Shown here: piece after piece, positions 656 through 52,812 of the stretch
Numbering within the stretch: the stretch's first letter is position 1
How the letters are laid out: each line of letters opens with the position of its first letter
Source: Octopus sinensis
Lineage: Eukaryota
Direction: 5' to 3'
Assembly: GCF_006345805.1 (NCBI RefSeq)
Contig: NC_043001.1
Span: 22,568,001-22,632,000, forward strand
Length of the DNA: 64,000 nt
The notes under the pieces: model-generated
Told to the model about the DNA's origin: nothing
What the model saw: only the letters and a program-made list of their open reading frames with translations
Database searches by the model: none
Program-made: the position numbers and the translations under genes

Positions 656-739
656 CTGTCAGGAAAAAGTATAAGAACATGAAATTCAGTGAGAACAATG
701 GAAAGAGGTACGACTTTATTGTTGCTCTCAACAGGGTAA
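656..739 (-). CDS. VPS18: VPS18 coding exon 11 (YPVESNNKVVPLSIVLTEFHVLILFPDR); gene continues beyond position 1
   Basis: PLSIVLTEFH matches human PLAIVLTQFH (Pep3/Vps18 domain); donor GTGAGT. The 5' boundary is uncertain (739 or 724). Confidence 0.9.
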
Positions 740-966
740 TTGAAATGGTTCAGGAAAATAAGTTTTTTTAAAAGCATCATACATGTATTTGTTTTGTAAG
801 ATTCTTGGAAGTAAAATCTTGTATTGAAACTTGGAGATGAATATAAAGTAAAAAAAAAATAAGCAATTACATAGAAGAGGAGATACATGAGAGCCACATT
901 ATCATTGATAAGGTCATGGGCTGTGATGAAAGAGCTTTGATAATTTAGGTAATTAAATGACTAATC

Positions 967-1384
967 GGCGCAGGAGTGGCTGTGTGGTAAGTAGCTTGCT
1001 AACCAACCACATGGTTCCGGGTTCAGTCCTACTGCATGGCATCTTGGGCAAGTGTCTTCTGTTATAGCCCCGGGCCGACCAATGCCTTGTGAGTGGATTT
1101 GGTAGACGGAAACTGAAAGAAGCCTGTCGTATATATGTATATATATATATATACAAGTGTGTGTGTATATGTTTGTGTGTCTGTGTTTGTTCCCTTAGCA
1201 TTGCTTGACAACCGATGCTGGTGTGTTTACGTCCCCGTCACTTAGCGGTTCGGCAAAACAGACCGATAGAATAAGTACTGGGCTTACAAAGAATAAGTCC
1301 CGGTGTCGATTTGCTCGACTAAAGGCGGTGCTCCAGCATGGCCGCAGTCAAATGACTGAAACAAGTAAAAGAGTAAAAGAGAGT
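967..1384 (+). mobile_element. tRNA-derived SINE family 1 (full length, internal TA/TG microsatellite)
   Basis: A-box TGGCTGTGTGGT, B-box GGTTCAGTCC, (gagtaaaa)n tail. Other copies, approximate: 3686-4072 +, 10318-10672 +, 10829-11005 -, 17415-17580 -, 18575-18765 +, 39400-39630 +, 47160-47262 -, 57165-57335 -. Confidence 0.9.
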
Positions 1385-2290
1385 AATCATCTAATTAACT
1401 GGCAATAAAATTGAAGTGAAATACAATCAGTGCATGTGCTTTGTTGACAATATGACCTATGCTTAAGTAACCATATTCTTAAAAAATATTTTTAAAAAAT
1501 ATCAAGACCATCAATTTACAAAAGATTTTAAGTGTTATTCTTTGGTTTGAATAGTTCAAAGTTGGTATAAACAACCATTCTAACACATTAGAAAAAGACT
1601 ACAATATTGTCATGCCAACCACTCTGTGAGTGTAAAAAGCACCCACTACACTCACGGAGTGGTTGGCGTTAGGAAGGGCATCCAGCTGTAGAAAACACTG
1701 CCAGATCAGACTGGAGCCTGGTGCAGCCTTCTGGCTTCCCAGACCCCTGTCGAACCGTCCAACCCATACTAGCATGGAAAACGGACGTTAAACGATGATG
1801 ATGATGATGATGACAATGTGTCAGTAAACATGTGAATCAATGGAGTAATAAGATATCATTACAATGGTATTTTACATGACATTACAGGAATCTTTCTTTC
1901 ATTTTCCATTTATCCTTCTGATATCATCATTTAACATGTGGCTTCCATGCTGGCATAGGTTGGATGGTTTGACAGGAACTGGCAAACCAAAGAACTTCAT
2001 CAGGCTTCACCGTCTGCTTTGGCAAGGATCCCCTTCCTAACTCTCTTTATGGCTGGATCCCCTTCCTAACACCAACCATTTTACAGAGTAGAGTGGGTAC
2101 TGTTTATGTGGCACCATTATCAGCAAGTCTCTTATGCCAGCCATTTTACAGAGTGGATTGGGTGCTTTACACACAGCACTAACATTAGTGAAGTTTGTTT
2201 CAGCATGTTTTTTACAGCTGGATACCCTTCCTAATCCCAGCCACTTATATTCAGAAAATTGGTTATATTTTTCCTTCTCTGGACTTTTCT

Positions 2291-2335
2291 GTTTTCCTTT
2301 CTGATGAAGAGCTATGCTTGAAATGTCAAAAACTC
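2291..2335 (+). ncRNA. Degenerate Penelope-type hammerhead relic
   Basis: CUGAUGA-A-GAGC UAU GCUU-GAAAUGUC; two CpG-type changes away from GCUCGAAACGUC. Confidence 0.5.
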
Positions 2336-2467
2336 TCTCTTTTTACTAAGAGTCAAACAAATACAATCTATATGCACATCCTCTTGTTGTTCTGTTATTG
2401 TTCTTCTTAATGATTGACTATCCGATTTGACTTTATATATATATGGGGATAATTTTTAATGTAAGTG

Positions 2468-2832
2468 CTTTTTACAGTTTTCAGTTTTGTAAATACATAT
2501 TATGAAAAGCACTTACACAAAAACTTCTATCTTTTTTTAAAAGATTATTTTTTCATTTAATTTATTTTTAATTAAAATAGAAAAATCTTATTTCAAATAC
2601 TGTGACTGCATCAAGAAATTTTTCCAAAATCTTTTAATATCATCATCAGCGTTTAATGTCAGCATGGAAAATGGATGTTAGAATTTCTTGATGCAGCCAC
2701 AATATTAGAAATAAGATTTTCTTTTTAATTAAAAATCAATTATATAAAAAATAATCTTTTAAAAAAAAGATGGAAGTTTTTGTGTAAGAGCTTTTCATAA
2801 CATGTATTTGCAAAGCTGAAAACAGCAAAAAG
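2468..2832. repeat. Imperfect inverted repeat with about 150-bp arms
   Basis: Arms about 2468-2620 and 2682-2832; spacer 2621-2681. Confidence 0.9.
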
Positions 2833-3111
2833 TGATTCCATTAAAACTTTCTCCAACAGGTCAATGTTATCTGATTTTCCTTTTTTAAAGATTTTCTTTT
2901 ATATAAGTAATAATTTTTAATTTACAAAATATCTTTTTTCAGGCATCCCTGAACTTAATGTTCAGGCATTTGGTTCAGCTTGACCACTTGTTGTATGTAC
3001 CTGTTATATATGTGTCACTTGACATCTTGTAACCTATTTGAGAAATTTTAAAATAACTATATTTCTAATTCCAATTAGCCTAGCAATGGAGAATTGTATT
3101 TCCTTATATCA

Positions 3112-3658
3112 GGAAATATGCTGTGCTTGAGAAGACCCGGCAAGCCAAGTGAGACCATAACCTCGTGGCCTATGTCATGGATGTAACCAGCCCACTTATG
3201 CGTACCTTTCTTTCATTGGATACTAAACTCTGCTTGCGAAGACCTGTTGAGGCAAGTGAAATCGAAATCAAATACGATGACTGACATCCGTCCTAGTGGA
3301 ATGCTAAGAGCACCATCCGAGCGTGATCGTAGCCAGAGCAGCCAACTGGCTTCCTTGCCGGTGGCACATAAAAAGCACCATTCGAGCGTGATCATTACCA
3401 ACGTCCCCTTACTGGCACGTGAAAAAACATTTGAGCGAGGGCGTTGCCAGTGCTGCTGGACTGGCTCCCGTGCAGGTGGCACGTAAAAGCACCCACTACA
3501 CTCTCAGAGTGGTTGGCATTAGGAAGGGCATCCAGCTGTAGAAACTCTGCCAGATCAAGATTGGAGCCTGGTGCAGCCATCTGGTTCGCCAGTCCTCAGT
3601 CAAATCGTCCAACCCATGCTAGCATGGAAAGCGGACGTTAAATGAGGATGATGATGAT
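3112..3658 (+). mobile_element. RTE LINE 3' end (ORF end, repeat-containing 3' UTR, (GAT)n tail)
   Basis: ggaaatatgctgtgcttgagaagacc ... ggcacgtaaaagcacc units ... ttggcattaggaagggcatccagctgtagaaa ... gttaaatgaggatgatgat. Confidence 0.85.
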
Positions 3659-4135
3659 AATTCACTTTATTACTGTTCATTAAGTAGGTGCAGACATGGC
3701 TGAGTGGTAAGAAGCTTGCTTCCCAACAATATGGTTCCAGGTTCAATCACACTGTGGCACCTTGAACAAGTGTCTTACACTATTAACCTTAGGCCGACCA
3801 AACCCTTGTGAGTGGCTTTGGTAGGCAGAAACTGAAAGAAGCCCATCACATGTATGTGCGTGTCTTTGTGCATGTTTGTCCCCAACTACTGCTTGACAAC
3901 CGGTGTTGGTTTGCTTCCATTCCTGTAACTTATCAATTCAGCAAAAGAGGCTGATAGAATAAATACTAGGCTTAAAAATATAAGAACTGGGGTCGATTTG
4001 TTAGACTAAGCCCTCCAAGGTGATATCCCAGCCTGACCGCAGTCCAATGACTAAAACCAGTAACAAGTAAAAGGTAACTGTTTTATGTTTACAGGTGAAT
4101 AAACCTAACAGAAGAAAGTATACTGAAAAGGATAT

Positions 4136-4217
4136 GGCATAAGTTTAGAGTTGAAAGTAACAGAGTTCGGGCCAGCAGCACCTTGGACATTAATATCACC
4201 ATAGTAGATTCCGGGTC
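4136..4217 (-). CDS. VPS18: VPS18 coding exon 10 (PGIYYGDINVQGAAGPNSVTFNSKLMP)
   Basis: ttttctag acceptor; GIYYG matches human GVLYG. The 3' boundary is placed at a U12-type ATATCCTTTT donor; the alternative weak GT donor would end the exon at 4124. Confidence 0.88.
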
Positions 4218-4799
4218 CTAGAAAATATAAAAAATATGAAAAAAACAGTATAACAGAAAATCTCATTTGCATATATCTATTTTTCATATTCATTAGTACT
4301 TTGGTATTCAAAGCTAAATAATTTTAATTTTCAAATGATTTGAAATTTTTAATTACTCATTTGATTGAATTTACTCTTGAAATTAATTCATACAATTGTT
4401 TAAATCCTAGAATTTATTTAGGATTCAAGAATATGAATTGATCAGATAGTTAAAAAACAAATTAATAATTTTTATGAATCCAAAAATTATTTCGATGACA
4501 AAAGATTCATAATTTTGATGAAAAGAAAAATTACTACTATGAGGTCCGCAAACAGTCGCAGCTATTACAAGGGAGATAATCACTTCATCACAATATGAAG
4601 TGGGATTATAAACTTGAAATTGAAATTAGATATGAAGTAAAAGAATAAAAGAATGAAACCAGTTCAAATAATCTTATCATGTTGTTGAAGAAAGCTGAAT
4701 AGATAAATAAATCACTGTAATGTTAAACAATTTATGATTTAAATTTGCTCCATCTTACATTACAATCCACTTTCTTCTCAATAAGACTATTTATAGTGA

Positions 4800-6661: not shown

Positions 6662-6760
6662 CTGCCATCAGGGCAAAAGCTTTGCCTCGTGATTTTGAGC
6701 TATTGTTAAATATACGTAGTTCACTTGTACCGAAATTATAAGGGAGTTCCAGGAATTCTT
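6662..6760 (-). CDS. VPS18: VPS18 coding exon 9 (EEFLELPYNFGTSELRIFNNSSKSRGKAFALMAG)
   Basis: Aligns with human FREFPSNLGYSELAFY...AFAWMMG; gttacag acceptor, GTAAAT donor; phases 1/1. Confidence 0.93.
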
Positions 6761-6958
6761 CTGTAACGAGATTGATAAATAAAATACATATATTTATTGC
6801 AAGAAAATCAATTGTTCAAAAATATATACTTCAATAAACCATTAATGACAGAACAAATAAAAATGAAAACCAGAATCCAAGCAACAATAGATTTGAATAA
6901 TCAATAATGAAAATGTTTTAAATATTCCCTTCAGAGAATCATTACCAGATATAATATA

Positions 6959-20433: not shown

Positions 20434-20505
20434 CAAAGTATCATCTTGTGGAGGAGCAGCAACTCTGGAAGATTCTTGCTCATACTGATCAAGAATGGAT
20501 GACAT
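20434..20505 (-). CDS. VPS18: VPS18 coding exon 1 (MSSILDQYEQESSRVAAPPQDDTL)
   Basis: ATG at 20505; the N-terminus resembles human VPS18 MASILDEYENSLSRSA; donor GTAAGT; phase 0. Confidence 0.93.
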
Positions 20506-40118: not shown

Positions 40119-41979
40119 AGGCATTCCAGCTTTTATCATCCTATCCTGTTCTTTTGTGTGGGGAACCCAAGATCATGTTATCCAACAAGTTGAGATTTGG
40201 TAGCTATTTCTAGCAGGTTGAACAGGTCGTGTTTAGCTTCCTTCTCTGATTTGGATACATTAATTATATCTAGTAAAGGTTCCTTTTCAGAAGCATTTGG
40301 CTTTTGTAAACAGTTAATCCCAGTCCATGACTTAGCTGTTTTTATCTCTAAAAAGAAAGCTCATCTTTTTTATGCAGTTTTGTGCAGTGTGTGAGCTTCC
40401 CAATAGGTTTGCTGTTTATTCCCAGTCAAGTACCCCTATGATCAAAGGCATTCCAACTGTAACCCTTCCTGATTTTTTTAGAAGTATGCAGAGCCACAAT
40501 ATTTTACATATCCTTTACTTATTTAAAATGTTTGGTTGTGATTTGAAGGAGACTTCACTATTATTTCTAGCAGATCATGTAACCATATTAAGGCTCTATC
40601 GTTCACTCATCAAGATGAACCTGTCAAAGGGTTCTAGCTTTAATTTTTTTGAGGTGTGATTATTCATGAGATGGTACAGTGTTGAGATTAGTTTTCTTTG
40701 TAGGTGTAATGGGGTGTACTGTGTTTTGAACTGTTGAAGGGGACCAAGTTTAATTTCACTGGTCTTGGAGGGCTTGGCTAAAGCCATGACCACAGTCCCT
40801 TCCTCCAGACTAAGCCTCACACCTGCCAAAAATTAGTAAGGACCTCATTGAAGATGTTTTGAGGTCCCTATCTTTACAAAATTAGCCAGGGATTTGGATG
40901 TTCATCCTTCATAGAAAAGGGTCAAGGAATGTAAACTGCAGAAGAAAATATGAATACAAGTTACTGAGCTCTAGGATTGAAACGTGAGAGAAAGTACAAA
41001 AGACAGCTCTGCCAATAGATGTTCATGAAAGTATTGTGAGGTAGCGTTACCATTTTACATCCACTTTTACATGCTGGCATGGGTTGGATGGGTTGTTATT
41101 GTCTGAGTCAATTCTTCTTTTGAGTTACTGCTCTCTTAGACTGGTTAGGGACCATGTCTTGTTTGTACATTCCATTTTTGGTGTGGTTTCAGTAATTGAA
41201 GGCCTTTTCCATCACTAACCCCTTATTAGTGATATGTTGTTTCCGTTCATTTACCAAACACTTTACAAAGTGTACTAGGAGTATTGTATCATGGTACCTG
41301 CACTAAAGAGGTTTTGTAGTTCCTGGCAAAGTAAAAGAATGTTCCCTCTGTCTCCTTACGTCTCTGTATATACACTTGTTTTCTTTCTCACACAACTAGG
41401 CCGAAAGCAGGCAAGAATGAGAGGGAAATAGAACATTAAGTAATGACAGAGAACCAGAATGACATCATTATCATATTGTCTTCATGGTAATCATCCTAAT
41501 TTTATGTTGACTTCTCTGTGTTTGCATGGATCGGATGGCACCTCTCCAGTACAGCATCCTATCATTTGTTGCATTCCTTTGTCCTTCTAAGATCAGCTTA
41601 ACATATATATATATAAATAAAATAAATGCACCCTTTTTAAAGCCTAGCCAGGCTCATGGGCCCAGTTTCCTGGTTTCTATGGCATATGAGTTCCCCAGCT
41701 GGACGGGACGCCAGTCCATTGCAGCGTTACTCATTTTTGCCAGCTGAGGGAACTGGAGCAACATGAAATGAAGTGTTTTGCTCAAGAACACAACGCGTCG
41801 CCTGGTACAGGAATCGAAACCACAATCTTACAATCATGATGCTGATGCCCTAACCACAAAGCCACGCACCTCCACACACACGTGTGTGTGTGTAATATCT
41901 CCTACTAAATGTGCTGAGTGCCCTTTTCTTTTGTTTGTCCACTCACTTGTATATATATATATAATATATATATATATAT

Positions 41980-52344: not shown

Positions 52345-52812
52345 TACTAATTTCTTTTATTGGTTACGAGGGCCCTAGACATGGAAGACAATATCAGTGG
52401 ATGAGATACAACACATAAAACACACAAAAACAGGTGGAGTTTACATTGATAAAAGGGAGACACTACAATATTAAAGAATATAACAAAGGATATATAAATA
52501 AAAGTTAGGGAAATAAATAATTAATAAATGAATAGAATCTCCAAGTGTAGGGCAGTTTACTTTGGGTAATTTGGGCAAAACCCCATGCAAAAGACCTGGA
52601 TTACTCTGCCACCCCCAAGAAAAGCATACTCAGAGTAGATCCATTCAGTATTGTTACTCTTGTCCACTTTTTATTAAACACACTAGAAGGCAGCACCTCC
52701 CTCTCTACTCTCACTTTCCTCTTCAAATGATATTTGAAGAAATTGATAAGAGCTTGACCAGATAGGAAAAAGCTTGTCTTCAAACCTTTCAAATGGGTCC
52801 ACCACACAGCCT
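52345..52812 (-). mobile_element. Tx1/L1-clade LINE 3' fragment
   Basis: ALINFFKYHLKRKVRVERE...FNKKW C-terminal signature followed by an A-rich tail. Confidence 0.6.

Follow-up and report, generated by a model that had tools for sequence, protein, structure and literature searches.

Which splice sites join coding exons 10 and 11 of the VPS18 gene of Octopus sinensis, and which spliceosome is likely to use them? The question is raised by a window of 64,000 nucleotides (nt) of RefSeq assembly GCF_006345805.1 (contig NC_043001.1, positions 22,568,001 to 22,632,000), which holds part of the gene for the VPS18 protein XP_029636145.1 (970 residues); unless stated otherwise, positions refer to this window. 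An earlier note, made from the letters alone, had proposed that a minor-spliceosome (U12-type) intron with the non-canonical ends AT-AA separates the two exons. Our analysis upholds this proposal: positions 4135 to 740 of the minus strand are very probably VPS18 intron 10, an ancient U12-type intron with AT-AA termini. Consensus splice signals, the complementary DNA (cDNA) of a related octopus, four octopod genomes, U12-type GT-AG introns in orthologous genes that represent four further phyla or classes, and the genes for all four minor small nuclear RNAs (snRNAs) speak for this reading. From these sequences we infer that the intron is removed by the minor spliceosome in O. sinensis, and that the AT-AA junction is used in its RNA.

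The junction between exons 10 and 11

Mapped on the window and 30 kb downstream of it, XP_029636145.1 places the VPS18 gene between window position 20505 and about -23640 on the minus strand, and the order of its coding exons agrees with the numbering of the two exons as 10 and 11. Coding exon 10 (4136 to 4217, minus strand; approximately residues 292-318) reads ...PGIYYGDINVQGAAGPNSVTFNSKLM plus CC, the first two bases of a Pro codon, and it ends at 4136 in ...AAA CTT ATG CC (...AAACTTATGCC); intron 9 before it has one GT-AG solution only, which ends at 4218. Coding exon 11 (656 to 739, minus strand) starts with TTACCC at 739, provides the third base of the Pro codon followed by YPVESNNKVVPLSIVLTEFHVLILFPDR, and ends at 656 in front of GTGAGT, the beginning of an intron 11 that likewise has a single GT-AG solution, from 655. 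Between the two exons lies intron 10 (740 to 4135, minus strand), 3396 nt long and in phase 2, and across it the protein reads LMPYPVES (LMPYPVESNNKVV). The letters and minus-strand coordinates quoted in the earlier note are all correct, and its statements on reading frames were borne out by translation. The AT-AA junction is in frame and gives LMPYPVESNNKVVPLS (LMPYPVESNNKVVPLSIVLTEFH); an AT-AC junction removes 4 nt and causes a frameshift that meets a TGA as exon 12 begins; an AT-AG junction at 725 is in frame and gives LMPNNK; and a GT-AG junction (4124/4123 to 725/724) is in frame and gives LMPYPFHNNK.

For every pair of neighbouring exons we listed each combination of donor and acceptor that exactly reproduces the protein. 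A single GT-AG solution results for each of the 22 other resolved VPS18 introns. For intron 10, eight placements are compatible with the protein (AT-AA, TA-AT, AT-TT, TC-TA, CC-AC, CT-CC, TT-CC and TT-CT), none of which is GT-AG, GC-AG or AT-AC, and a U12 donor is found in the AT-AA placement alone. This eightfold ambiguity exists because Tyr-Pro is encoded twice in this frame, once by the donor motif (A)TATCC(T) and once by the beginning of exon 11, (T)TACCC(T); knowing the protein is therefore not enough to locate the junction. Three mRNAs are possible, namely ATGCC-TTACCCTG, ATGCCA-TACCCTG and ATGCCATAT-CCTG.

A spliced transcript decides between them. The cDNA L006 (3160 nt) was assembled from run SRR3401912, an octopus metatranscriptome (PMC11662614), and encodes a VPS18 of 970 residues that is 95% identical to the O. 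sinensis protein without gaps. It reads AACTCTAAACTTATGCCTTACCCTGTTGAGAGCAACAATAAAGTC, that is, AAACTTATGCC joined to TTACCCTGTTGAGAGC (ATGCC joined to TTACCCTG). This sequence corresponds to the AT-AA placement and excludes the other seven placements, as well as the AC and GT-AG junctions, in that animal. Of the placements, only the one with AT...AA termini fits both the cDNA of the related octopus and the RefSeq protein of the present genome. The length of the product is in agreement: from the Met to the Ser of PLS there are 14 residues in octopods, in Argonauta and in a squid-like transcript, compared to 13 in the GT-AG reading and nine in the AT-AG reading.

The intron ends carry the signals of its putative class. 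U12-type introns are classified by their donor and branch-site motifs rather than by their terminal dinucleotides. The intron begins at 4135 with ATATCCTTTTCAG (in a longer reading directly after exon 10, ATATCCTTTTCAGTATAC), and its first nine bases, ATATCCTTT (4127 to 4135, minus strand), form a U12 A-type 5' splice site of the pattern RTATCCTT that directly adjoins the last coding base. Near the 3' end the sequence TTTTCCTGAAC (748 to 758, minus strand) matches the U12 branch site (TTCCTTRAY), departing from TTCCTTAAC at a single position. The second A of its GAAC, at 749, is the presumed branch A; from there the intron end is 9 nt away, and from the first A 10 nt. Up to position 740 the intron reads CATTTCAA, ending in CAA, and the terminal dinucleotide AA (740 to 741, minus strand; ...TTTCAA-TTAC) immediately precedes exon 11. 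A polypyrimidine tract is lacking in front of the 3' site: the end reads AAAAAAACTTATTTTCCTGAACCATTTCAA, in which, judged by eye and not by a score, the branch motif is the sole pyrimidine run.

The mere abundance of these motifs is no argument, because the counts of both 9-mers are close to those in shuffled sequence; ATATCCTTT is found three times in the 64 kb (1.3 expected) and TTCCTKAAC once (1.2 expected), so that only placement and conservation count. The two other exact matches to ATATCCTTT, at 40508-40516 (plus strand) and 52485-52493 (minus strand), are not preceded by an open reading frame and look like chance matches. The placement of the motifs at intron 10 is not random: one abuts the last base of exon 10, the other lies 9 nt before the first base of exon 11, and both are conserved in octopods.

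This conservation was observed by comparing the O. sinensis locus with its orthologues in the genomes of O. vulgaris, O. bimaculoides and Argonauta hians. All four share an identical 5' end, ...AAACTTATGCC followed by ATATCCTTTT and with it the complete donor ATATCCTTT, and a common 3' end, TTTTCCTGAACC(A/G)TTTCAA followed by TTAC (in a longer reading, TTACCCTGTTGAGAG), in which the branch-site match is identical and the terminal AA is kept. Between these ends the introns differ widely in length (3396 nt in O. sinensis, 2958 nt in O. vulgaris, 533 nt in O. bimaculoides and 2689 nt in Argonauta hians), and past the first 10 bases at the 5' end and approximately 19 bases at the 3' end the Argonauta intron cannot be aligned with those of Octopus.

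Introns with AT-AN termini are known as the 'A-type' class (PMC8280824, citing Levine & Durbin 2001 and Dietrich et al. [quoted passage not shown] As AT-AA, though uncommon, is already well documented as a minor-intron terminus, VPS18 intron 10 would join a known class and not found a new one. It shares with the A-type AT-AA introns the ATATCCTT donor, a TCCTTRAC-like branch site near the 3' end, the lack of a pyrimidine tract, a last nucleotide A instead of C, and a non-zero phase. There is no qualitative difference; the VPS18 intron merely has a short branch spacing (9-10 nt) and an exonic AC within range, 4 nt downstream. A literature search for VPS18 with a minor intron returned no paper linking the two in the library that was searched.

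According to the mechanism that we propose, the donor ATATCCTTT would be recognised by U11 and then by U6atac, and U12 would pair with UUUUCCUGAAC. In the second step ...ATGCC would be joined to TTACCC... at the AA 9 nt past the branch A, giving ...KLMPYPVESNNK....

Orthologous introns and the minor spliceosome

A comparison with the orthologous intron of other molluscs, which the earlier note had suggested as a check, was carried out and extended beyond molluscs; besides the conservation within octopods described above, it revealed U12-type GT-AG introns in the gastropod Haliotis rufescens, the bivalve Mytilus edulis, the brachiopod Lingula anatina and the jellyfish Rhopilema esculentum. In each of these four species the same Pro codon is split after its second base, in the same phase, GT-AG is the only canonical solution, and the donor at the matching place is GTATCCTT(T) or GTATCCTG. 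Haliotis rufescens has ATGCC followed by GTATCCTTTC ... ATCCTTAACCTGACGTAG and then CTACCCGAAG, with the branch A 10 nt from the 3' end, and Lingula anatina has ATGCC, GTATCCTGCA ... GTCCTTAATTTCTGAAAG and ATATCCCAAA with the same distance. The branch A is 12 nt from the 3' end both in Mytilus edulis (ATACC, then GTATCCTTAT ... TGTCTTAACATTTATATCAG, then ATACCCTAAA) and in Rhopilema esculentum (TTACC, then GTATCCTTTG ... TTTCCTTAACTAGATTGTAAG, then TCCAACAGAA). Judged by these motifs the four introns are textbook U12-type introns of the G subtype, and the position of a U12-type intron is conserved in the orthologous gene of all four species. No intron is present at this site in Branchiostoma (amphioxus), Lytechinus (sea urchin) and Ischnura (damselfly).

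The octopod intron and its orthologues in the four species share the codon, the phase and the motif architecture, with a branch spacing of 10-12 nt in the orthologues; the octopod 3' site stands at essentially the ancestral spacing (9-10 nt compared to 10 nt in Haliotis and Lingula). They differ in their termini, GT-AG in the orthologues and AT-AA in octopods, and in length, 237-665 nt compared to 533-3396 nt. The simplest reading of this distribution is that the intron was already of U12 type in the cnidarian-bilaterian ancestor, was lost several times, and exchanged its GT-AG ends for AT-AA in the octopod lineage. There a G would have become an A at the 5' end and likewise at the 3' end, with AT-AG or GT-AA as the presumable intermediate, and the intron would have stayed functional because it is recognised by its 5' splice-site and branch-site motifs and not by the terminal dinucleotides.

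Switching of U12-type introns between G-type and A-type termini was reportedly described by Burge, Padgett and Sharp in 1998. The VPS18 case resembles such switching in that an old U12-type intron keeps its position and motifs while the terminal dinucleotides change, but differs in that the octopod end state is AT-AA and not AT-AC. On this reading VPS18 is a further gene whose minor intron is traceable to at least the cnidarian-bilaterian ancestor, and its intron would be a clean example of a switch from G-type to A-type (AT-AA) inside molluscs.

The machinery for minor splicing appears to be in place. In the whole 2.72-Gb O. sinensis assembly, genes for all four minor snRNAs were recovered as Rfam matches above the cut-off (U12 126.6 bits, U6atac 96.9 bits, U11 94.5 bits and U4atac 83.8 bits). 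The U12 gene reads 5'-AUGCCUUAAACUAAUGAGUAAGGAAAAUAACG... (5'-GAGUAAGGAAAAUAAC) and contains the branch-site pairing region GUAAGGAAAAU. Aligned by hand, without a folding tool, U12 and the branch site form seven contiguous pairs (UUUUCCU with AGGAAAA); next come a mismatch of G and A, an A-U pair, a bulged A and a C-G pair. A homologue of CCDC84/CENATAC is also present in the genome; CENATAC has been reported to promote the splicing of A-type (AT-AN) minor introns in human cells (PMC8280824).

Two further observations concern this machinery. The exons of CCDC84/CENATAC match twice with identical scores, approximately 143.8 kb apart (C18:12400149-12437102 and 12543953-12580804), which reflects a segmental duplication or else a stretch that the assembly contains twice. 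For U6atac, the matches above the Rfam cut-off number 43 and are spread over many chromosomes, compared to one to five each for U11, U12 and U4atac, which suggests many U6atac-derived copies or pseudogenes.

Competing splice sites

Several points weigh against the AT-AA reading. The mismatch in the branch-site match TTTTCCTGAAC is a G for T. The distance of 9-10 nt from the branch A to the AA falls slightly below the optimum of 11-13 nt published for U12-type introns (PMC3584512), whereas an AC at 13 nt is within it. Two gene models have other junctions: the O. vulgaris model CAI9722827.1 reads LMPYPFHNNK through the GT-AG pair 4124/724, with FH in place of VES, and the newer O. bimaculoides model XP_052823980.1 reads LMPYPFYFLNHFNYPVES through a GT...AT junction whose end falls midway through the branch-site motif. 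Finally, the junction in O. sinensis rests on a RefSeq protein model and on the cDNA of another octopus.

The AC figures in an addition to the AT-AA reading rather than a replacement of it. The earlier note had suggested that two U12 3' sites could compete, the AA at 740 being productive and the AC at 736 causing a frameshift (of -4), and their ratio would tune the output of VPS18 via nonsense-mediated mRNA decay. The AC in question (736 to 737, minus strand; TTAC = 739-736) is a potential out-of-frame 3' site within the Tyr codon TAC of exon 11. Besides its spacing, the frameshift and the TGA confirmed by translation are as this proposal requires, and the choice of U12 3' splice sites is described in a review as error-prone, with alternative 3' sites having been seen (PMC3584512). 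However, a transcript joined at the AC was not found, and the assembled octopus cDNA uses AA. The AC belongs to the Tyr codon of a conserved Tyr-Pro, and as TAC is found in Haliotis and Mytilus as well, its conservation needs no regulatory explanation; the AA in turn matches the ancestral position of the 3' site, which in Haliotis and Lingula follows the branch A by 10 nt. We therefore regard a regulatory competition between the two sites as unlikely, and slightly more so the specific scenario in which the octopod switch to A-type termini set a sub-optimal AA (9 nt) against an optimal out-of-frame AC (13 nt), with a regulated fraction of the transcripts being degraded. At a low level the AC may well be used by mistake, since U12 3' sites are reported to be chosen in an error-prone manner. 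If the regulatory proposal were true, the dosage of the HOPS/CORVET complexes would be coupled to how active the minor spliceosome or CENATAC is, and splicing specialists would have a moderate interest in an AA/AC switch supported by RNA.

A different explanation assumes that intron 10 is an ordinary GT-AG intron of the major spliceosome, from CA-GTATAC (4124/4123) to GAGAG-C (725/724), and that the resemblance of its ends to U12 signals is coincidental. The GT of this donor lies at 4122 to 4123 and the AG of the acceptor at 725 to 726 (both minus strand), the latter within exon 11, 24 nt from the branch A, in the stretch CCTGTTGAGAG. This path is in frame, it is the junction used by the O. 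vulgaris model CAI9722827.1, and a GT is found at the donor position in three Octopus species. As the earlier note had pointed out, the reading demands a weak donor: CA-GTATAC has neither a G at -1 nor a G at +5, and the acceptor has a G at -3 and no pyrimidine tract. Moreover, Argonauta has no GT at this place but reads TTTTTGATATG there, where the frame meets a TGA; the octopus cDNA does not use the junction; the product is one residue shorter than all cephalopod relatives, with the conserved acidic residue after Tyr-Pro gone; and the orthologous introns are unmistakably U12-type. Taken together, these observations make the major-spliceosome reading very improbable. In a weaker form the GT-AG path would yield a minor in-frame fallback isoform; for A-type introns it has been documented that weak minor splicing can lead to the use of major splice sites in the vicinity (PMC8280824). 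Protein searches for short or truncated octopod VPS18 forms (intron-retained, AC-frameshifted or GT-AG) found none, which is weak evidence given the few gene fragments in the collection.

That the true junction is instead one of the other seven placements, e.g. CC...AC, shifted by 4 nt to end at the AC, is scarcely credible, for although all eight placements yield MPYPVES, these seven have no recognisable donor and predict an mRNA with ATGCCATACCCTG or ATGCCATATCCTG, whereas the cDNA reads ATGCCTTACCCTG (in the mRNA form of the AT-AA junction, ATGCCTTACCC).

Gene models, intron interior and neighbouring sequence

The AT-AA reading also bears on the public gene models. The expectation in the earlier note that this junction is mis-annotated holds for some of them only: CAI9722827.1 and XP_052823980.1 use other junctions, whereas the AT-AA product LMPYPVES is found in the RefSeq protein of O. 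sinensis, XP_029636145.1, and in the older model of O. bimaculoides, XP_014777728.1. Where this product has PVES, XP_052823980.1 reads PFYFLNHFNYPVES, a spurious insertion; the model is also short (890 residues) and reads intronic sequence near its N-terminus. Predictors restricted to canonical splice sites can find wrong solutions that are in frame because the donor TATCC and the next exon both read Tyr-Pro. The AT-AA reading would explain why three public Octopus models disagree at one junction and would show the correct one, a practical and modest value overall.

In tblastn alignments Tyr-Pro appears on both sides of the intron (4127-4135 and 732-739), a general trap for protein-guided models at this place. 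The same double reading of Tyr-Pro, by the U12 donor (R)TATCC and by the next exon, is found in molluscs and Lingula; the jellyfish orthologue does not show it.

The interior of intron 10 consists largely of repeats. The 533-nt intron of O. bimaculoides aligns solely to window positions 4135-4028, 1599-1381 and 966-740. The stretch from 1600 to 4027, which according to this alignment is absent from the O. bimaculoides intron, is composed of repeats and transposable elements including copies resembling short interspersed nuclear elements (SINEs). A SINE-like insertion of 414 nt (967 to 1380) is present in O. sinensis only, being absent from O. vulgaris and O. bimaculoides, and is approximately 70% similar to a copy near 3660-4073. 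A hidden internal exon between 740 and 4135, which the earlier note had named as an outcome that would speak against its proposal, was considered and rejected: the O. bimaculoides intron aligns to the two ends and one short block, the remainder being repeat insertions, and the orthologous proteins have no extra residues. The short O. bimaculoides intron and the lineage-specific repeats therefore leave no room for a conserved internal exon. Approximately 47 bp at about 779-830 match more than 35 other places of the genome with 85-91% identity and represent a fragment of a dispersed repeat; the fragment lies approximately 25 nt upstream of the branch site and is present in O. bimaculoides and O. 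vulgaris, but not in Argonauta.

Elsewhere in the genome, an intronless VPS18-like sequence with several stop codons (C8695:196553-198458, approximately residues 330-950) was considered as a retrocopy of octopus VPS18 and rejected. It is 25-32% identical to octopus VPS18, and about 30-36% to the human sequence; because of the low identity to the octopus gene it is not a recent retrocopy and is silent on the junction.

A second site of the gene at which the models differ is intron 8, whose acceptor ...GTTACAG-AAG-AAT (6756-6764, minus strand) is a tandem acceptor of the NAGNAG type. The O. sinensis RefSeq protein reads DTPEEFLELP at this place, and the O. vulgaris protein reads DTPEFLELP, one Glu shorter, as expected with use of the downstream AG.

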